A stretch of DNA of 64,000 nt from Dimorphilus gyrociliatus. Lineage: Eukaryota > Animalia > Annelida. Positions 1,107 to 61,348 of this stretch are shown one piece after another; positions within the stretch are counted from its first letter, which is position 1, and each line of letters starts with the position of its first letter. The DNA lies in assembly GCA_904063045.1 (NCBI GenBank), contig CAJFCJ010000031.1, positions 62,001 through 126,000 on the forward strand, read 5' to 3'. Under the pieces are notes generated by a model that was given only the letters and a program-made list of their open reading frames with translations, did no database searches and was not told the DNA's origin. The position numbers and the translations under genes were made by a program.

Positions 1107-4100
1107 GACGAAATGGTATGATTTTAGAAATACTTGACTGTTAAACAGCTTAGGGATAAACAGTATATAAAAAAAATTACAATTCCATCACATTTTCCTT
1201 TATTAAAAAGTAACAGTTTATAAATTTAACGCAAACTTAATTGATCGTGTAACAGATGTATATTTATGTATGAAAAAATAAATTATGGCTTATTCTTAAC
1301 ATATATAAATATATTAAGTATATATATTAGTATATACATATAAATTTATATGTATAAATATATATATATATATACTGTATATATACTAATATATTTTAAT
1401 ATTTATATATAAAAATTCATGATGCCAGTCATGGCAAACGAGATAAGCTCGCAATAAAAATCAATGTACAAACTAATTTCAAATGAGATATCAAATTAAT
1501 TTTTACCTATTTTTAATAGAAGAAAAAAGTAAAAACGGCATTTTCTATGTCAGTTACTGCAAGAAGGCTTGTAAACAAATCATCCCTCGCCAACCATAAA
1601 TGTCAGGACCTTTTTCGCGTGCAGTTAATGAAGGAGTGGAGGGGGAGCCAGTTCGATCCAGCGTGATAGTAATTATAATGTACTTATACTGACAAACCAT
1701 TCATTAGCTTCAGTTGGCACACCGATTCTCTGAAATCTTTCTGTAATCGATGAGCGCTTAATTAGAAAACGGGTTACTTCCCTTTTCCTCCTCTTTTTTA
1801 TTTGATAAACGGTGCCAAAAAAAAAATGAAAACGATAATTCCATTTCTATTCTATGTCTTTATTTTCTTTTTTTCGATGTTGGCGGTCGTGAAATGGATC
1901 AATCTTCTCGATCTAGACAGATCGATTATCATATATGTCTACAAATTGCCTCTTTTTCTTTCCTGTTTTTCACTCATCCTTTATAAAAAGAAAACAAGGT
2001 TTCCCACCCTCCTCTCTTATTTATCATTTTAAAAGGACGTGTTAGCCCTAAAATAGTTCCTTTTTGCTTAAAGCGTATGTAATAGAAAATATTCATTTTA
2101 ATTACTTATACATAAAAATATAACATATACTGTATGTAATGTATAAAGTATAATAAAAATTTATATTCAGTATACATATGATTATAAATATAATATTTAA
2201 GATTAAATGCATTTGCACTTAGTCATATATCTATATATATATATATATTAAGTATGTAAAATCATGTAAAGGAAATCTAAATTAAACGCCCAGTTCCTAC
2301 TAACAACTAATTGCTCGTAATACAAATTTTCCAACGTTATATCTCACATTCGTGCAGGATGGCTACAATTTCATGACATGCTCGTCTATTTTACACGATA
2401 CAAATAATACTAAAATATACTTTTATGATAATTGTTCTATGTATACACTATATGATTTAGTACTTGGATACACCAGAGGAAAATATTTCTGAACCTTAAG
2501 GGAATATCTCTCTCTTTCTGTCTCTTTCTGTCACTGATTTTTTTCCCTTTCATCCTCTTTGAAATTCGACCATGTATTATAATTTAGCGTGTTAAAAACG
2601 GAGATATCGACAGTGCTCTTTCCGTTATTTCTCTTCCTTGTTATTATTTAAAATATATACAGTATATTTTGATATTTTATATAACATGATAATAAACACC
2701 GCTCTGCGATAATGTAATAATAATCCGGAAATTATTAATTTTAATCTTTGCCACCCGATTAGCCAGCGGTGCAGACGTGACGAATTTTCGGAGGAAAACT
2801 CTTACCGTTGAGAAAAAGACGCTTAAGGCGAGGAGTGGGGGAGGGTGGGAAGGGGGGAGAAGACTAGACATTTTTGCAAACTATAAAAAGATTATCAGCT
2901 CTTCCTCTCTAAACTCCTTAAACTTTTTCTCTTTAAAATTTTATATTACTTGTACAATTGGCATAAAAGTAGTAATAAAAAATTTAATATAAAGACTATT
3001 TCTACTAAAAGCATAAACGGTGCAAAAGGAGTGGAAAAGATATATAATTAAATTATACTAGCCTTGCTTTTTAAAGAAGATGGTACACAATGACTCTATT
3101 CTTTAAAGAATGTTTGGACTTGAGTCAATGGTAATCTCATCAATTTTAGTATAACTAAATAAAATAAAGTGGGAATAGTGGACAGTATTACGAAAGAGAG
3201 ATAGAGAAAAAAAACTGCAACTAAGATATTAGTACAGTCGTCAATGGAAGATAATTATTCAACTGAGTACATTCCATTGAAGAGGGATTATTTGACAACC
3301 TGTACAAATTATAAATTTGTCGGATTAAACAGAGATAATCTATTTGTAAACAGAAGGGAATATAGAGTTTAAAAAAAGGATAGATAGCGAGAAGAGATTT
3401 ATAATGATTGATTTATCCTAAAAAAAAGAGAAGAATCTTGATGATGATAGCTATTTTCTGGTAATCAAATGAGAAAAGTACGTACTACTTCTTAAAAGAG
3501 AGCTCGAGAACTCTAAATACAGTGAAGAAAAATATGCAACCCGATATCAGATGGCAATAGTTTAGCTCTAAGGGTAATTTAACAATCGCTTTTCCGGTAT
3601 TTAATTATACGCGCCAGATTCTGCCTGAGTACCGTTATCAAGAATATTTATGATAAAAATCATAGAAAATATTATTAAAGGTAAGAGTAAAATGATTCTC
3701 TTTAAGATCACCTCAGGCTCAACTATAATTAATTATTTACAGATGCTATTACATAGAAATTGTAAATCCTTAGGCAAGGGACATTGTAATTTTACTTAAT
3801 CAATCAAGCAGAATGTAAATTGTAAAAGAAGATCGTAGAAATCTTTCTAATAGAAGTAAAATTAAATCGATGGCAAATGTTTTAAAATCTAAAAATAACA
3901 TTTGTTTACACTTATCTTTCCTTTATTGAGAAAAATTAGGAAATGAAAGTAATATTTGAGCTTGTAATTAGCTTTTTTAAAAGTAAAAAAGAGAGAAAAG
4001 TAAAGAGGAAATTAATAATTTACAGTTGAAAAAAAAACGGAGTGTAAAGGAGAAAAGGTATAAGTTGGATAAGGTTAACTATACCATTACTTTTCCAAGA

Positions 4101-44063: not shown

Positions 44064-45606
44064 TTATTTGCTATAATTCATACGTTTGTAGGTTGTACGT
44101 AGAATGCAGGCAGCAACTAGTCCAAATATCTATAGCAAAATAGAATTATCATTCTCACATTAAAAGTTACCATTAGTATTATTAAAAAGCTGAAATGGAT
44201 TTTACTAACTTGAATAGCTGCTATGCAAAAGCCTATAATCATCAATTTTATTGAATGATCGTGGTACCATTTCTTTAAAGCTTCTTCGCACCCTTGTTTG
44301 TTCAAATATTTAGAAGGGTTTCCCGTCTCCGCTTCATTTAGGCATTCTTTATACTCATCCGCAACCCTATCTTCGCCGTAATTCGAACAACAAGAATAAG
44401 GGACCATCTGAGTTCCAGGCCCACCGAACCACGTACTATTTTTGTAATCTTTATAATTGTAGACTCCGCAACATTTCAGCTGATTGCAAAAAGAGAAAAA
44501 AAAACATAATAAAATCATAAAACATCATCAAAGCATTTTACTTGGTCTTGCAAAAAATCGTAAGCGGTAGTTGTGTCGTTGACGCGTCCATACTCTTTCT
44601 GAACTTCTCGTATCATGTCATCGTGCAAATGATCGTTGATTTTTTTCTTGTATACAATTGCGAGGACAGCAACCGCTGCCTCGGCCAGCATGATAACGAT
44701 CAAACAAGCGGCGTACTACAGACAAAAAAGAATCTTTTGTAAGAAAAAACTTCGCAAGTAAAGTTAACTTTTAACGAAACAACCAATCTTCAATACAAAC
44801 ATACAAATTAAAAGCTTACCAAGAATAAAAGAGGTTGACTCTTCTTAATAGCGCCGCAACAACCGATAAGAGATACAAGGAGAACAACTCCTCCAATTAT
44901 GATAAGAATAAGGCTTATTTGACCCAACAAAGGAGCAGCTTGGCCAACGTTAACAGCATCCAGGTACTTGGATAAAGTATTATCCAATTTCATCCATACT
45001 CCCATTCCAAGTAGTCCAATACCGGAGAGCTAGAAAACATTGTTTTTTATTAACTAATTTCTTTAAAAAAGACACGAATATTTCTTATCACGAATCCAGT
45101 GCAGAAATTATTTGCTGTCAAGAAATTCTGCTGAAAAGGCAAAATTCTCGCCAAATAGGTTAATGTAGAATATTACGGGCCTTCGAATCGTCTATATACC
45201 TAGGTGTATTGTTATAAATTCAAAATTCACTATGCGTAACCAGTATAAAAAAACCGTCGCTAGGTTAGTCAAAACGGATTTATTCTACTTCTTGTATTTT
45301 CTTTTTCTTTATTTAAATATGAGAATACGTTATGTTCAATACAATCAAACGATCTTTTAGCTGTATTTTCCCTCTACATATTCATAAATACGTATAATCA
45401 CGCAAAGTTTTCTATTCTATTAGTAATGTTCTTTAAATTGGTGCCTAGGTATATTCTTATTATCGTTCAAAAATTAGGTCAAAATGAAAAATGTTCCAAT
45501 AAAAGAATAAAGAACAAAACAACCCCTTTAGTATTAATAAAATACTTACAACAAAAATTGTATTGAAGATAATCAAAAAAACTCTGGGCAAATTTCCTCC
45601 GCACAT
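44064..45606 (-). CDS. Tetraspanin (5 exons)
   Basis: MCGGNLPRVFLIIFNTIFV/LSGIGLLGMGVW (TM1), LIGCCGAIKKS (TM2 end), YAACLIVIMLAEAAVAV (TM3), large loop with LKCCG, VPYSCC and QGC, then TM4 and tail IFGLVAACILRTTYKRMNYSK* ending at 44064. Confidence 0.92.
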
Positions 45607-46459: not shown

Positions 46460-47083
46460 ATGGAGTTGACAATCATTTCGAATGATGACGAATGGAGCAC
46501 GGATAGTGGTCTATTTTCATCGTCATCTTATAAAAGTTCAACGAACGACGATTACGATTCGACTGATTACGAAACTGCCGAAAGTGGAGACGACGTAGAG
46601 AGCGTCTACCATTCGGCCAGAAGCGATTCTAGTCTGAACGACAAGTCCCCAAAGAAAAACTCTAGCCTAAGCGAAGCCCTGCAGAGAACTGCAAGACGAA
46701 TGAGTGAGGAACACTTTCTATCAGAAAATGGACCTCCCGCTCCTTTTGGTCTTCTTCGTCAATGGATCGTGGAAGGCGTTGTAGGAGGAGAGCAGATTTT
46801 AAAATACATTCCAAGAGATTGTCTAATTGGTAGACAATTAAAAGTAGCAGCTCAATTTTTCCATGTCATGAATGCTTCAACAAGACAAATGAATCATGTA
46901 ACCCATTTCCAAGGTCTTCTTATGACTCACCGATCAAATTCATGCCCTGATCTATTGATAAGTCGATTACGCAGTGTTGAAAATGTCTGGCCTAGTACCA
47001 TAAATTCGTCAATATCAAACAAATTGAAACGAACATCTCAATTAGATACAGACAGCCTTACATGGCCAAATAATATTTGGTGA
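46460..47083 (+). CDS. Uncharacterised 207-aa protein with acidic Ser-rich N-terminus (possibly spliced further)
   Basis: Long ORF with coding-like composition and good start context (aaagATGG); contains RSNSCP. The stop overlaps two consensus splice donors (GTGAGT 47080, GTAAGT 47084), so the 3' end is uncertain. Confidence 0.65.
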   Translation: MELTIISNDDEWSTDSGLFSSSSYKSSTNDDYDSTDYETAESGDDVESVYHSARSDSSLNDKSPKKNSSLSEALQRTARRMSEEHFLSENGPPAPFGLLRQWIVEGVVGGEQILKYIPRDCLIGRQLKVAAQFFHVMNASTRQMNHVTHFQGLLMTHRSNSCPDLLISRLRSVENVWPSTINSSISNKLKRTSQLDTDSLTWPNNIW

Positions 47084-47620
47084 GTAAGTTGAAAAAAACA
47101 AAACAAATAAAAAACAAAAACAAATAAATCTATAAAAGACGTTTAAAAAAACACAACAGATGGGAAAAGATAAGGAAAAAGTGAAAGATGGATTGTGTAA
47201 AATCTTTCTCTTTTATTACTCTTTTTAAAAATGGATTTTAATTATGAGAAATAACGTCTTAATTAGTATATTTTTAAAGAAATATCTCAATTTAAAATTA
47301 AATTATTGTGCTTTTATAAAAGAAATTGACTTGGATTTTATAGTATATTAATTTTATTCAAATATAACAAATGAAACAAATTATGACCTATATCTTCTGT
47401 TCATTTCTATTCTGCTACTATTCTTACTACTACAAATCATAATAATATCATAAAATCTATATTAATTACAGGAAGTGTGGTCTTTATTTTAAGCCTAATT
47501 TTAGTAATAGACATCTGTCGGAACTGAATAAATACTCGGCTGCAAAAAAATAGACTGATTAAACAAACATTTTCCATATAAATATGATGGTCTTTAACGC
47601 GATTGTCATCAGATTTCAAC

Positions 47621-50600
47621 ATGAAGGTTCTCCTATACTTCTTACTTGGTAAACTTTATTCAAAGATATTCGCTTAACTTTTTCGCTTTAACTCTTTATA
47701 ATCTCTTTTAGTTGGATTCGGATTGCAGATAACTTCCGCATCTGATTACGTTTGTCAGAGCGGTTTAAACAGTTTTAACATCTTTAGTGGTTCAGGCTAC
47801 TTGAAAAGTAGAAATTTTCCATCAAATTATAACAATTACGAAAATTGTCATTACTTTTTTAACCCGCCAGCTAATTACGTAAGTTTATTACCTTTGTTCA
47901 ATTTCATACGTGAATACGGTCTTTTTTTCTTCCATCTTCAAAAAGGTTGTTAAGCTTGTATTTAGAGATTTTGAGTTAGAAGGTCGAAAACCTTACTGTC
48001 GCTATGATAAGCTTAAAATATCCACTCGAAGCTATTCAAAAATTTTCTGCGGACAGAGTTCAAGTGAGTTTTACGAATTTTTCAAAACTATATCTAAAGA
48101 AATAAAAACTCGATTCTTCCAGTAAGTGGATCTTCTACAACCACTGGCACTGTACTTATTGGGGAATGGATAACTATCAGAGCGCCGTTTAACATCTCAT
48201 TTACAACCGATAGTTCTATAACTCGTAGGGGATTTGAGATAGAATTCAAGTTTGAAGGCGATCATTCAGGTAGCAGTCCACAATATGGAAATAACTCCTC
48301 TACATATCCTCACGGAAACAGTTCCACTGGATATCCTCACTATCCACACCACAATGGCTCCACCAATTATCCTCATGGAAACAGCTCCACTGGATATCCT
48401 CACTATCCGCACCACAACAGTTCCACAAACTATCCTCATGGAAATAGTTCCACTGGTTATCCCCACTATCCACATCACAACAGTTCTACTGGCTATCCCC
48501 ATTATCCACACCACAATGATTCCACGAACTATCCTCATGGAAACAGTTCCACTGGATATCCTCACTATCCACACCACAATGGCTCCTCCAATTATCCTCA
48601 TGGAAACAGCTCCACTGGATATCCTCACTATCCGCACCACAACAGTTCCACAAACTATCCTCATGGAAATAGTTCCACTGGTTATCCCCACTATCCACAT
48701 CACAACAGTTCTACTGGCTATCCCCATTATCCACACCACAATGATTCCACGAACTATCCTCATGGAAATGGTTCCACTGGCTATCCCCACTATCCACACC
48801 ATAACAGTTCAACTGGCTATCCCCATTATCCACACCACAACAGTTCTACTGGATATCCACATTATCCACACCACAACAGTTCCACGAACTATCCTCATGG
48901 AAATGGTTCCACTGGCTATCCCCACTATCCACACCATAACAGTTCAACTGGCTATCCCCATTATCCACACCACAACAGTTCTACTGGATATCCACATTAT
49001 CCACACCACAACAGTTCCACGAACTATCCTCATGGAAATGGTTCCACTGGCTATCCCCACTATCCACACCACAACAGTTCTACTGGATATCCACATTATC
49101 CACACCAAAACAGCTCCACTGGATATCCTCACTATCCGCACCACAACAGTTCCACAAACTATCCTCATGGAAATAGTTCCACTGGTTATCCCCACTATCC
49201 ACATCACAACAGTTCTACTGGCTATCCCCATTATCCACACCACAACAGTTCCACAAACTATCCTCATGGAAATGGCTCCACTGGCTATCCCCACTATCCA
49301 CACCACAACAGTTCCACTGGATATCCACATTATCCACACCACAACAGTTCTACTGGCTATCCCCATTATCCACACCACAATGATTCCACGAACTATCCTC
49401 ATGGAAATGGTTCCACTGGCTATCCCCACTATCCACACCACAACAGTTCTACTGGATATCCACATTATCCACACCAAAACAGTTCCACTGGATATCCACA
49501 TTATCCACACCACAACAGTTCCACAAACTATCCTCATGGAAATGGCTCCACTGGCTATCCCCACTATCCACACCACAACAGTTCCACTGGATATCCACAT
49601 TATCCACACCACAACAGTTCTACTGGATATCCCCATTATCCACACCACAATGATTCCACGAACTATCCTCATGGAAATGGTTCCACTGGCTATCCCCACT
49701 ATCCACACCATAACAGTTCAACTGGCTATCCCCATTATCCACACCACAACAGTTCCACAAACTATCCTCATGGAAATGGCTCCACTGGCTATCCCCACTA
49801 TCCACACCACAACAGTTCCACTGGATATCCACATTATCCACACCACAACAGTTCTACTGGCTATCCCCATTATCCACACCACAATGATTCCACGAACTAT
49901 CCTCATGGAAATGGTTCCACTGGCTATCCCCACTATCCACACCACAACAGTTCTACTGGCTATCCCCATTATCCGCACCACAATGATTCCACGAACTATC
50001 CTCATGGAAATGGTTCCACTGGCTATCCACATTATCCACACCACAACAGTTCCACTGGCTATCCCCATTATCCGCACCACAATGATTCCACGAACTATCC
50101 TCATGGAAATGGTTCCACTGGCTATCCCCACTATCCACACCACAACAGTTCTACTGGATATCCACATTATCCACACCAAAACAGTTCCACTGGATATCCA
50201 CATTATCCACACCACAACAGTTCCACAAACTATCCTCATGGAAATGGCTCCACTGGCTATCCCCACTATCCACACCACAACAGTTCTACTGGCTATCCCC
50301 ATTATCCGCACCACAATGATTCCACGAACTATCCTCATGGAAATGGTTCCACTGGCTATCCACATTATCCACACCACAACAGTTCCACTGGCTATCCCCA
50401 TTATCCACACCACAACAGTTCTACTGGATATCCACATTATCCACACCACAACAGTTCCACAAACTATCCTCATGGAAATGGCTCCACTGGCTATCCACAT
50501 TATCCACACCACAACAGTTCCACAAACTATCCTCATGGAAATGGCTCCACTGGCTATCCCCACTATCCACACCACAACAGTTCTACTGGCTATCCACATT

Positions 50601-51520
50601 ATCCACACCACAACAGTTCTACTGGCTATCCCCATTATCCACACCACAACAGTTCCACAAACTATCCTCATGGAAATAGTTCCACTGGCTATCCACACAA
50701 CAACGGATCCGTACATCATCCTCGTAGAAACTGCTCAACTAGCAATCCCCACTACCCACACCAAGGTAACCCAAATTCTCCTAACCATCACTTGTCTGAT
50801 GGTATAATATCTTATTAAAAGGGTTTTTAAAAATAAGTGTAAAGAATCTATCTTTCCTTTCAGCTCAAAGATGCGTTGGAAATCAAGTCGTTGCGAATGA
50901 ATTTGGAAATATAGTGCACGAAGGATATCCAGGAAAGTATGAGAGATACTCGTGGTGCTCATTTGACTTTCCAAGTCCTCCTGAAAAGGTTTGAGGATAA
51001 TTGTGACATATATTAAATTTATTTCGTCTTTTATTTATAAAAAACTTACATTAGGAGTTGATGGTAAAATTTATAAGATTCGATCTGGAGAATAGTGGAA
51101 ATTGTATGTCTGATTTATTAACGTTTTCATCGATTGGAGGTTTTAGAAGAATCTTTTGCTCCAACGGTATCACAATGTTCTTTTTATACAATATAGCAGT
51201 ATATTTTTCTGAATATGTTTTTACTTTTATTTCTCTTTTTTGCCAAACTAGGAACTGATGAAAAGAGTCCAGCTATGCATGTATGGATTGCAGTGCCAAC
51301 ACCCCTTCACATTGAATTCAAATCGAATGGAATAGTAAACGGAAAAGGATTTCATATACAGTATAAGTTTGTCAATTCGAGTAATGTTAACAATCTGCAT
51401 ATGGTAGGAAGCTATTACACAATGAAAGAAGCAACAAACACCCACAATCAAGGTTCATCTGCTGAACAGAGACCAGTAGAAACTAACAGACCTTGCCATA
51501 GTAATTCGACTAATCCTTAA
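47621..51520 (+). CDS. Secreted CUB - His/Tyr/Pro/Asn repeat - CUB protein (7 exons, 1,165 aa)
   Basis: Exons 47621-47648, 47712-47878, 47946-48063, 48123-50801, 50864-50988, 51055-51166 and 51252-51520 join in frame (3,498 nt). Signal peptide MKVLLYFLLVGFGLQITSA. CUB1: C...GYLKSRNFPSNYNNYENC...LVFRDFELE...CRYDKL...FCG...FTTDSSITRRGF. CUB2: C...GNIVHEGYPGKY..YSWC...VKFIRFDLE...CMSDLL...FCS...FKSNGIVNGKGF. Confidence 0.88.
48316..50700 (+). repeat. Coding tandem array of 36-nt (NSSTGYPHYPHH) and 27-nt (N[S/D/G]STNYPHG) units
   Basis: By-eye count gives 49 twelve-residue and 22 nine-residue units. The first 225-nt block (48316) is repeated almost exactly at 48541. All indels are multiples of 3. 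Confidence 0.95.
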
Positions 51521-54500
51521 GGAAACATTCAAAAAATCATTTAAGAAAAGAGAAAAAATTCAAATAGATTTCAATTTTTGAATAAATATTTAACGAAGCA
51601 TTGAAAGAGATAGTAAATGTAGAATATTTGTAATATCATTAAATATGTCATTTCTCTTTCGATCTCTTTCGATCTCTATCTTATTTATTTCCTATTGTTG
51701 CAAAATATCTTGATACGGATCTATTGTTTAAGCGATAATTGAATTAATACTTTTTAAAGTTATTAAGAATATCTTTTATCATATGAAATTACTTGTAAAT
51801 TATAGAAAAAATCTATTTTTAAAGATTTATTGATGAAATTCTATTGTTTTCAATAGTTTAGGCATAAATATCTCTTTACAAACAGCTTAATTGTTTATCT
51901 CGCCATATAACTTTTTTTTTTTAACAATCGACGTACTTGACTTTAATTGTTAATTTTCAACTTTGTTTTTTTCATTATTTTCAACCTTTTTAAAACTCTT
52001 TCGAGTAGCCTAAACGAACGCCTTCTATATAAATTAAAAAGCTGTTTTAAAATCAGATAGAAGATAGATGGCGCTGTGTTTTTTCTTTAATATAATACTT
52101 TCCTCCATTTAATTATATAAATGTTTTAAAATTGCTGATTCTGAGGAAAGATTAAGGAAAGTTAAGTATAGACAGGAAATTAGATGGTAAAGGAAGAACA
52201 ATAAGATAGGAAAGAAAGAAAATTAGGATAACGTTGTATCAATGGTCAATCATTTAAATTGCAATTTCAGAAGGGAAAGATTAAAGCGGAAGATTGTTTG
52301 ATTACAGCCTGTAAGGGTAAAACCTCCCTGTGGAGGGGTTAAAGAATGAATGGTATTGAAATTTTGTAAATCTACTTATTCCGGTTGTATTCATTGCTAC
52401 TTTTGAAAATCTCGAATTATATTTTATGATCTGAAGATAAAATACGAGGCCGAAAATTTTGATGGTCGTTGGGAAAAGACCGAAAGGGCGCCCGTTCGTC
52501 GGGTTAGCGAAATTCAGCTAAATTTGTACATTACTGGACAGCAGGAGGGATGGGCGTACATAAGATATCAAAGGCGTCGTAAAAGTTATGCAATTAGGCA
52601 GTTACCATTTATCCTTAATGCCTATTTAGAATGAACATTTAAATTTCTTTTATTTATTTTTGTCACTTTTTCGTTAAATTTATCACCTAGAAATTAGTTG
52701 GAACAAGGTATTATTTCAATATTTAACCTACATGACTATGTAGTTGTTTTAGTATTGAACAAGCATTTAGGAAAACAGCTTCTCTCCCACACGTTCCCCG
52801 CCCCCCTCTGAAACTATAGCAGGTGTCAAAAATTCGCTGCTCAATCATCCAATATCCAATAAGAAGTGTCACGGACAAGCAGAGACAGAGTGTGAGAGAC
52901 AAAAAGTGACGCACGGAGGAGTAAGGAATACGATTGACATAAATAGGTGGAGTCAAGGAGGGGGGAGTGACTGGAATGCAAATTTATCGTTATTTAATTT
53001 AATTATATATCGCTAACGAGCCTGTCATCCTATTGAATTGTAGACTATCTACCTTTTCCCTTGATTTCAACGCAAAGAAAAGTTATAACGTAAGAGCGAA
53101 AAAAAAAGACCGCTTTTAAACTATCGACTGTGCGTTGGCACCTCTCCCCAGGGGCTATTGTGCAATTGGCGGGCGCATCCGGGTTCTTAACAGGTTGTTG
53201 GACAAGTGCCCAAAGCTCTGAGAAAATACCTTTATTTCACGTCACATTGTTTCGTTGTGTAATAATAACTCTGTTAGGAAGAAGGGGTTAGCTAAGTAGG
53301 AGGTCCCAAGACTATGGTCTCGGTGGAAATTTGAACATTTGAACATAAGATCTTTTCTTATTTTTCTTTCTTGCTCCTACCCCCTCTCGCTCTTTCTCTC
53401 TCTCTGTCTCCCCTCTGTGCTTCCTCTACCTTTTTAATTTTTAAAATAACATCGACAGATTTATTTAATGATTTTTAGAAAATTTACTACCTCAGCGAGA
53501 GTGACGTTGAATTAATATGGCGTGAGAACCGGCGTCCGGTGTATTGTTGGTAAATAACGTAGTTGGAGAAAAAATATTACCCTCTTTATCACGTGATCGA
53601 TCAGCGTGTTCGCACCCCGAGATTATCTATTAAACGAATAGTTTTTTTCCGATTAGCTTGAGGCAATATGAACAGAAATAGGCATGTATAAATTGAGGAA
53701 AAGGATTCGATATATAATCTATTATTATCGCATATCCAATAATCTAATCTGTTATCAGATAACCCAATTGTGTTGTCATATAATCTCGAAATCCTTAAGT
53801 TTTTTTCTTACGCGTATGCATATACTATATTTACACATAGACAGATAGGTAGACAGACACAGACACATAAACTACGACTCATGTTAAATTCTTTTAGTTT
53901 TCTTTTCGAGTACGCTTAAGAATTTGTTCGTGTATTAAAGAAAAAGATGGTCGTTAAAGCCCCCACCGAAAATTACTTTTATAGTGCAATTTATTACCAA
54001 TTGAGCGTTTTTTAAATCGACCTTATCCGAATATTAACGAGTTTGTTGCCTTAAATAGTTTATTCTTACCCAAAGGGTGGAAAAAAACACAAAAGTCATA
54101 CGCAGTACTATTAAATAACCAATAAAGCTTTACCAAACAAATTATAGGCTTATAGAAATTAAAAGTAGAAAACAAAAAGGAAAAAAAGTAAATTAGATAA
54201 AAAGTCATAAAATTGTAAATTTAACTTTTGTCCACAAACTAGTATTGGAGTTGTTATTAAACATTGATATTCCGTCCATGTATATATAAATTGGCAGATT
54301 TACGCTTTATAGAGCATATGTATAAGTATCAATTGTTTACTAAGAGGATTAAAAAGTTTTACAGGCCAAAAGGAAAGAAAAACTTAAGATTAAACGCGAA
54401 TTTACTTTCCCTTACAAAGATAAAGAGGCGAGCATCTGTACACGAGTCCGTACGCTAGACGGTTTATGACGCTTTCACAAATTCGGAAATCACATGCCTT

Positions 54501-60571: not shown

Positions 60572-61348
60572 ATGAACGAACAAGTGAAAACTACGGGAGC
60601 CGAAAATAACCCTCACAAAGTATATAGAAATGGAGAGAACTATTCAAAAAAATTGAGAATTGTTCACATATCTGATACCCATCTTGAAAGGGACAATCAG
60701 AATATACCAGACGGTGATATAATTATTCATTCAGGTGATTTTGGTCAATACAGATCGGGATTATCAAAGGAAGAATACTTTTCAAGATTGAACAGTTTTT
60801 TTAAAAATCTACCTCATAAATATAAGATTTTCGTTGGTGGAAATCATGATAGTCCTCTGGTAGATTGCCAGAGAAGTTTAATAACCGAGTGTCAGTATTT
60901 GATTGATGAATCGGTGACGATAGAAGGTATACGAATATACGGATCACCTTGGAACAAGTGGAGATATACATCGTTTGCCAGAGCGTTTACCATAAAGAAT
61001 ATAAAAGCCAAGTGGGAATTAATAGATCAAGATTCGGACATAGTTGTAACTCATCAGCCGCCATTTAATTTGCTCGATTTGGCCAGTTATAACCATTATA
61101 TACCGAATTTTTTGGTTAAACTTCTAAGCTCTTCTCGCTGCGAGATTTGTAGTCAATATCATCCAGGTAGAAATCATTGGGGATCGAAAAGTCTTCGAAG
61201 GATTCTAACTGAAAAGATAAAGCCAACACTACATCTATTCGGTCACGTTCACGAGTGTTTTGGGGCTACAACAAACGATAAAATACTCTTTTGTAACAGC
61301 GCTATTAAACAACGGGGACATCCTCAGGTTATCGATTTCTACTTTTAA
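60572..61348 (+). CDS. MPPED1: MPPED1/2-family calcineurin-like metallophosphoesterase, copy A (intronless, 258 aa)
   Basis: All five motifs present: ISDTH, HSGDF, GGNHD, VTHQPP, FGHVHE; plus GIRIYGSPW and a terminal PQVIDF strand. Confidence 0.88.
   Translation: MNEQVKTTGAENNPHKVYRNGENYSKKLRIVHISDTHLERDNQNIPDGDIIIHSGDFGQYRSGLSKEEYFSRLNSFFKNLPHKYKIFVGGNHDSPLVDCQRSLITECQYLIDESVTIEGIRIYGSPWNKWRYTSFARAFTIKNIKAKWELIDQDSDIVVTHQPPFNLLDLASYNHYIPNFLVKLLSSSRCEICSQYHPGRNHWGSKSLRRILTEKIKPTLHLFGHVHECFGATTNDKILFCNSAIKQRGHPQVIDFYF

Follow-up and report, generated by a model that had tools for sequence, protein, structure and literature searches.

A predicted secreted protein of Dimorphilus gyrociliatus with a histidine- and tyrosine-rich sequon array between two CUB domains

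Mussel foot protein 1 (mfp-1) is composed of about 75 tandem AKPSYPPTYK decapeptides, is rich in lysine and needs 3,4-dihydroxyphenylalanine (DOPA) made by tyrosinase; the shell matrix protein prisilkin-39 of Pinctada is made of Gly/Tyr/Ser units. Vertebrate histidine-rich glycoprotein (HRG) combines cystatin-like domains with about 12 GHHPH units and binds its ligands through tandem His-Pro repeats, and the jaw protein Nvjp-1 is Gly/His-rich. In the His-rich proteins of squid beak (HBPs), deprotonation of His near pH 6-7, followed by His-Tyr hydrogen bonding and Tyr stacking, drives coacervation (PMC6884462). Zn-His binding (hardening) and pH set the mechanics of Nvjp-1 in the annelid Nereis virens (PMC9465683). 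The listed ligands of HRG include Zn2+ and haem (PMC8843877). Here we describe a gene lying in a 64,000-nucleotide (nt) stretch of the genome of the annelid Dimorphilus gyrociliatus (contig CAJFCJ010000031.1, positions 62,001 to 126,000 of the forward strand; this whole stretch is the window, and positions below are counted from its first letter). The gene would encode a long array of His-, Tyr- and Pro-rich units, each beginning with an N-x-S glycosylation sequon, placed between two CUB domains. Its exon structure, its coding frame, both CUB domains, strong purifying selection on every unit of the array and a mollusc protein of like layout are shown below.

On balance, the evidence leans towards an intact, single-copy gene with a secreted product of about 1150 residues, consisting of a signal peptide, a CUB domain, the array, a second CUB domain and a short tail, and likely to form a hydrated gel or coat.

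Gene model and coding frame

The gene occupies positions 47621-51520 of the + strand, opening with an ATG at 47621 and closing with a TAA at 51518-51520, and is divided into seven exons. All six introns are of the GT-AG type and measure 59-98 nt; phases are compatible across exons, and the spliced coding sequence (3462 nt, 1153 codons) is free of stops. The coordinates proposed in a first-pass annotation, made from the letters of the window alone, were exact, its exon structure was supported, and we regard the gene model as strong. The features of the locus are as follows.

47577-47582, + strand: TATAAA, candidate core promoter element, its 3' end 39 nt upstream of the ATG (inferred from a pattern match)
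47621-47648, + strand: exon 1, ATG and first nine codons (MKVLLYFLL, signal-peptide-like); ends in phase 1, donor GTAAAC
47712-47878, + strand: exon 2, end of the signal peptide and first third of CUB1, two Cys; CUB profile matches
47946-48063, + strand: exon 3, middle of CUB1 (FELE...CRYD...FCGQ), two Cys; ends in phase 1, Pfam and PDB matches
48123-50765, + strand: exon 4 as a whole, 2643 nt; open in the frame of the first-pass annotation
48123-48289, + strand: start of exon 4, last third of CUB1 (ending ...GFEIEFKF) and a short Ser/Gly linker; CUB profile matches
48290-50765, + strand: rest of exon 4, repeat array of 825 residues; donor G/GTAACC, phase 1
50864-50988, + strand: exon 5, first third of CUB2, two Cys; match to a CUB profile from this genome
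51055-51166, + strand: exon 6, middle of CUB2 (FDLE...CMSD...FCSN), two Cys; ends in phase 1, match to the same profile
51252-51520, + strand: exon 7, last third of CUB2, hydrophilic tail and TAA; match to the same profile, BLASTP match to the end of CUB1
51581-51586, + strand: AATAAA, candidate polyadenylation signal 61 nt past the stop (inferred)

The N-terminus reads MKVLLYFLL-V-GFGLQITSA followed by SD. Inspection by eye supports the signal-peptide-like character given to it earlier, with likely cleavage near ITSA/SD. At the other end, exon 7 encodes a hydrophilic tail of about 50 residues with one extra Cys and two sequons, and no hydrophobic C-terminal stretch was seen by eye.

The first-pass annotation had held that the true frame of the large exon lacks a start codon and is thereby hidden from the list of open reading frames (ORFs). 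This was confirmed: the frame contains no ATG, GTG or TTG in exon 4 and so is missing from the mechanical ORF list. Over the array the +1 frame is free of stops as well, giving the ORF that this list reports instead, of 851 residues with a TTG start (48252-50807, + strand) and rich in Thr, Ile and Pro. We rejected this ORF as the coding frame and regard it as a by-product of the repeat, since third-position bias favors the frame of the first-pass annotation. When the array was compared with itself at seven lags, the mismatches at codon positions 1/2/3 of that frame numbered 2/0/81, 5/0/68, 6/0/101 (lag 99), 10/1/84, 5/0/85, 6/1/74 and 3/0/72. Because the copies share ancestry these counts are not independent, and a count of variable columns is the fairer statistic. 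Over both unit types, 13 of the 17 variable nucleotide columns are third codon positions (binomial P = 3.4e-4), with shares of 9/10 in the twelve-residue unit and 4/7 in the nine-residue unit; three of the four variable columns at other positions belong to the codon for the sequon residue x. The repeats are therefore no product of chance. The 49 twelve-residue units exist in 18 nucleotide versions, which translate into only 3 peptide versions in this frame and into 16 different peptides in each of the +1 and +2 frames. The array shares its exon and frame with the last strands of CUB1, and a phase-1 GT-AG intron connects it to CUB2. Thus, the third-position bias, the continuity of frame with CUB1 and the in-phase next exon together indicate that this frame codes, and the pattern of substitutions points to strong purifying selection on each repeat unit.

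The CUB domains and the array

Domain and homology searches of the spliced model were made exon by exon; searches of the worm's own genome covered the 77.9-Mb assembly (349 contigs). Pieces of CUB1 match the Pfam CUB profile (PF00431, about 110 positions) in the right order, at positions 5-32, 39-77 and 91-110, with 17.8, 17.2 and 12.3 bits. Each piece alone falls below the Pfam cut-off of 21.4 bits, and the sum of 47 bits is our own addition. Exon 3 in addition matched PCPE-1 CUB1/CUB2 (E 1.4e-4) and C1r CUB1 (E 5e-4) in the PDB. Because Pfam gave no match to any CUB2 exon, a profile hidden Markov model (HMM) was built from 20 single-exon CUB domains of this genome. With CUB1, this model matched exon 2 (profile positions 4-28, 16.2 bits, as against a maximum of 6.6 in 200 shuffles) and the start of exon 4 (positions 88-107, 11.9 bits). 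With CUB2, it matched exon 5 at positions 4-31 (6.9 bits), exon 6 at positions 36-59 (12.5 bits) and exon 7 at positions 88-107 (13.1 bits), the maxima of 200 shuffles being 3.8, 4.1 and 8.1, respectively. The CUB2 pieces therefore cover the same three profile segments as the CUB1 pieces. Matches of CUB2 exons in the PDB were weak: the top five for exon 5 are N-terminal parts of MASP-1/MASP-2 CUB domains (E 0.16-0.5), and the top one for exon 6 is cubilin (E 0.021).

The two domains also resemble each other. They have intron positions and phases in common and are similar exon by exon; exon 6 resembles exon 3, and exon 7 aligns with the end of CUB1 at a BLASTP E of 2e-8. Each contains four Cys, two and two in exons 2 and 3 and likewise in exons 5 and 6, within the usual contexts C...C and C.yD...FCG/FCS. 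Taken together, these sequence comparisons support both flanking CUB domains, CUB2 more weakly than CUB1, and the CUB-repeat-CUB architecture suggested at first pass is borne out, through Pfam and the PDB for CUB1 and through the own-genome HMM for CUB2. In the Ca2+-binding CUB domains of C1r, C1s and MASP, acidic residues of three motifs act as ligands, Glu in F-x-L-E and Asp in both C-x-Y-D and S/T-D-x-S. The FELE and CRYD of CUB1 align with FDLE and CFYD of C1r CUB1, and the region of its last strand contains TTDSS; the corresponding motifs of CUB2 are FDLE and CMSD, with SNG in place of the third Asp.

The genome contains 116 CUB matches at exon level. Several of its CUB matches are interrupted near profile positions 37/38 and 77/78, as are both CUB domains of this gene, for example those at C77:99182-99470, C55:98087-98935, C59:98168-98492 and C74:18830-19989 (contig and positions). 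Such a three-exon layout therefore seems widespread within a subset of the worm's CUB genes.

Tokenising the translated array yielded 49 twelve-residue units, N[S/G]STGYPHYPH[H/Q], and 22 nine-residue units, N[S/D/G]S[T/S]NYPHG, along with 5 degenerate units at the array ends. The higher-order periods of 63, 99, 135 and 234 nt reported by Tandem Repeats Finder arise because one to three twelve-residue units come after each nine-residue unit. In composition, the 825 residues are 20.8% His, 14.9% Tyr, 15.2% Pro, 15.2% Ser, 12.1% Asn, 11.0% Gly and 8.8% Thr, corresponding to 172 His, 123 Tyr and 125 Pro. All the numbers given previously (49 and 22 units; about 21% His, 15% Tyr and 15% Pro; an N-x-S at the start of each unit) proved right. 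Exon 4 carries 77 N-x-S sequons, 76 of them within the array; successive sequons lie 12 residues apart in 49 cases and 9 apart in 24. Across units the sequon Asn and Ser are invariant and x is S, G or D. Since N and S stay fixed while the x position varies, the sequons look selected; the pattern fits what would be expected if glycosylation were the selected feature.

Besides His, the charged residues of the array amount to 0 Lys, 0 Glu, 2 Arg and 8 Asp. With Lys, Arg, Asp and Glu almost missing, the array would be a pure His-titratable polymer; its computed net charge is about +158 at pH 5 and about 0 at pH 7.5-8.1, including seawater pH. AlphaFold2 run on single-sequence input returned a predicted confidence (pLDDT) of about 37 to 39.6 and no secondary structure, which weakly supports a disordered state of the array.

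Relatives, annotation and neighboring genes

Word-index protein searches with the whole of exon 4 and with its first 56 residues (at two query lengths) gave no matches, and so no annotated model or transcript fragment of 142-1540 residues that contains this segment; HMMER, run exhaustively over 1.84 billion representatives, likewise turned up nothing near-identical. The product of a neighboring unspliced gene (60572-61345) is present in the same collection, from NCBI and UniRef. The absence of exon 4 from a collection that holds the neighbor's product indicates that the gene is unannotated or was modelled without exon 4; repeat masking could explain this.

The HMMER search produced 30 matches, of which the best 20 were read (the other 10 have E of about 3e-14 or weaker). 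Nineteen of these 20 were rejected as unrelated low-complexity repeats, some of which lie within a Tudor-like protein, within a polycystin-like channel or within a receptor phosphatase. The one meaningful relative among the best 20 of the 30 is XP_025078454.1 of the snail Pomacea canaliculata, "prisilkin-39-like isoform X1", a 299-residue model in which a partial CUB domain and a Ser/Gly linker come before some 14 TNSTGYPYY units, and another partial CUB domain comes after them. The Pfam CUB profile matches it with 52 bits over two stretches. BLASTP aligns it with the worm sequence at 42% identity (E 7e-26), beginning in the end of the CUB domain and continuing over the linker into the repeats. 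Its name is the composition-based product of an automatic pipeline; we know of no CUB domain in prisilkin-39.

The snail model is like the worm protein in its succession of CUB domain, Ser/Gly linker, sequon-led T-G-Y-P-x-Y units and second CUB domain. It is unlike it in having about 14 units rather than 71, in that the unit is a nine-residue one with N-S-T, and in that Tyr replaces the worm His so that the repeats have no His; it is moreover an uncharacterized fragment model without signal peptide, in which both CUB domains are partial. From this alignment, the core common to worm and snail appears to be sequon-T-G-Y-P-x-Y, with the histidines specific to the worm. That the sole protein with similar units among these 20 also carries a CUB domain on either side of them argues for common descent or shared design. 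Thus the architecture, which the first-pass annotation did not recognize, is not unique: the Pomacea protein has CUB, (TNSTGYPYY)n and CUB. Only these two proteins with such a layout are known to us, and no study of the layout was found.

No paralogue was detected in the worm's own genome with the repeat DNA, each CUB exon or the snail protein as queries, and the gene is single-copy. One match to the snail repeat, at C21:210728-214030, was rejected as a wrong-strand reading of a vWA-collagen gene. The - strand of that interval contains, at 1225-3237, a 670-residue ORF in which two vWA-like halves precede a collagen-like tail of near-identical GDTGRIGPQGNQGWTGRQ units. The ESM Atlas offered only weak CUB-fragment neighbors (0.80 for exon 4, 0.87 for the snail protein), and a scan of metagenome contigs found nothing. 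In the literature, we found no paper on a combination, in this sense, of CUB domains and His-rich tandem repeats and none that mentions the repeat motifs or XP_025078454.1.

Directly upstream of the gene, a 207-residue Ser/Asp-rich ORF (46460-47083, + strand) ends at TGGTGAGT, its stop overlapping a donor-like site, and an AATAAA lies about 40 nt beyond its end. This ORF probably represents the final exon of another gene with a non-secreted product. Farther upstream, on the - strand, a 133-residue ORF (44117-44518) with a CCG motif and further Cys pairs looks tetraspanin-like by eye (large extracellular loop and last helix).

Possible function and comparison with known proteins

A purely His-titratable array suggests that pH could switch the protein much as it does the His-rich proteins of squid beak. 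This is a more specific proposal than the earlier list of hydrogel, adhesive, egg coat or metal-sequestering mucus, and as a reading of the array protein it is plausible. The array would serve as a disordered, densely N-glycosylated spacer with some 172 His, strongly cationic and soluble in acidic secretory granules and uncharged in seawater. Upon release, deprotonation of His would allow His-Tyr, Tyr-Tyr and His-metal contacts, possibly joined by dityrosine links made by a peroxidase. The two CUB domains would act as end connectors, attaching either to partner proteins or to one another, and the product would probably be a hydrated gel or coating, as part of mucus, the egg cocoon or the cuticle surface. 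Females of Dimorphilus gyrociliatus lay cocoons (PMC9687449); beyond this, we found nothing in the literature on Dimorphilus secreted materials. The material concerned could be mucus, the cocoon wall or the cuticle surface.

The first-pass annotation had invoked Tyr cross-linking through DOPA or dityrosine. A scan of the genome at E <= 0.001 gave no match for the tyrosinase family (PF00264), a blank that does not prove absence, and found at least four loci for animal haem peroxidases, on contigs C2, C15, C6 and C20. Covalent hardening, if any, is therefore likelier to proceed through dityrosine than through DOPA: the DOPA part of the claim is left with no enzyme to support it, and the peroxidase route is possible. 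Sea-urchin fertilisation-envelope proteins with CUB domains may be dityrosine substrates; no paper was found in support.

Several points weigh against this account of the gene and its product. CUB2 escaped Pfam on all of its exons, and the signal peptide was called by eye only. The protein searches turned up no transcript-derived protein. N-x-S sequons, especially N-D-S and N-G-S, are less efficiently glycosylated than N-x-T. Dense glycans could hinder the required His/Tyr contacts. Finally, since the snail relative has no His in its repeats, the His chemistry would be lineage-specific and a function shared by the two proteins may not involve His. We put forward only tentatively, and with considerable doubt, the wider proposal that annelids and molluscs share an undescribed secreted family of CUB-capped, N-glycosylated Tyr-Pro arrays, whose Dimorphilus member, with about 71 units and 21% His, would be cationic and soluble in acidic granules and would gel, coacervate or bind metal in seawater.

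The best surviving alternative, though an unlikely one, is that the protein is a soluble, non-structural glycoprotein of body fluid or gut that binds or buffers metals in the manner of HRG, sequestering Zn, Cu or Ni (or haem) while its CUB domains dock to receptors. In its favor, the 172 or so His stand in HxxHH and PHG contexts, Zn2+ and haem are listed as HRG ligands (PMC8843877), and the CUB domains of cubilin, the top match of exon 6, are ligand and receptor modules. However, the Pomacea relative keeps the Tyr/Pro/sequon core without His, so that metal binding is not the conserved feature; 15% Tyr and a run of 71 units would be more usual in a structural repeat protein; and neither a cystatin nor any other HRG domain is present, the Pfam search having found no match to the cystatin family on any exon.

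We consider it more improbable again that the product is a pattern-recognition protein or agglutinin of surface or mucus, with a glycan-covered stalk presenting CUB domains that bind microbes or particles, as in mucosal proteins of the DMBT1 type. A secreted layout in which CUB domains are joined by a long, disordered and probably glycosylated spacer would suit such a protein, as would the many CUB genes suggested by the 116 exon-level matches, but the model includes no SRCR, ZP, lectin or transmembrane part, and a mere stalk would not need the extreme conservation of every His, Tyr and Pro position. Least probable of all is that the modelled gene does not work, being silent, losing the array from its mRNA or being read in the +1 frame through other splice sites: that frame is indeed stop-free over 851 codons and exon 4 is in no public protein found despite the presence of the neighbor's product, but the third-position bias fits the coding frame alone (the +1 and +2 frames giving their 16 peptides each), the array continues the exon and frame of the last CUB1 strands and joins CUB2 by a phase-1 GT-AG intron, skipping of exon 4 would delete one third of CUB1, and repeat masking may account for the missing annotation.

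If the secreted CUB-array-CUB protein is made as modelled, its two folded ends would be joined by a polypeptide spacer of 93 kDa offering about 76 sites for glycans, an unusually regular design in which the only groups titrating near neutrality are some 172 histidines set among 123 tyrosines. It would unite features studied apart in squid-beak, worm-jaw and mussel proteins, add a glycan brush to them, and offer a test case for the joint control of secreted-material assembly by pH, metals and glycans. Should a shared family of CUB-capped glyco-polymers exist, it would show a new principle by which coats of the mucus, cocoon or cuticle type are built. The locus also illustrates a gap in annotation: genes with tandem-repeat exons that lack an in-frame start may be systematically missed in compact invertebrate genomes.

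Among described proteins, mfp-1 and prisilkin-39 are alike in being secreted, in containing dozens of short Tyr-containing units (Tyr/Pro in mfp-1) and in forming coatings or matrices; they are not known to have a CUB domain or a sequon in each unit, and the worm array is without Lys. HRG resembles the predicted worm protein as a secreted glycoprotein with His repeats; the worm protein differs by its Tyr-rich array of 71 units, its flanking CUB domains and its different repeat unit. Nvjp-1 shares with the worm protein an annelid origin, richness in His and (for the worm array, as predicted) disorder, and is not known to have CUB domains or a sequon array; its Gly/His-rich composition may be set beside the 11% Gly of the worm array. 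To our knowledge, Dimorphilus has no jaws. HBP-1 and HBP-2 of squid beak are, like the array as predicted, secreted and disordered repeat sequences in which His, Tyr, Gly and Pro abound and other charged residues are few, and the charge curve of the array has the same shape as their pH switch. They differ from it in motif (GHGxY versus GYPHYPHH/NYPHG), in having no CUB domain and in length, the worm array being far longer; moreover, their modular repeats (GHGxY, GAGFA; PMC6884462) contain no N-x-S/T sequon, unlike the dense sequons of the worm. No relative of HBP or Nvjp-1 figured among the best 20 of the 30 HMMER matches, and the array contains no GHGxY motif; the likeness to both is functional only. 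We would place the predicted protein in a known kind, the secreted low-complexity His/Tyr structural proteins; its CUB-repeat-CUB layout has at least one uncharacterized counterpart in a mollusc.

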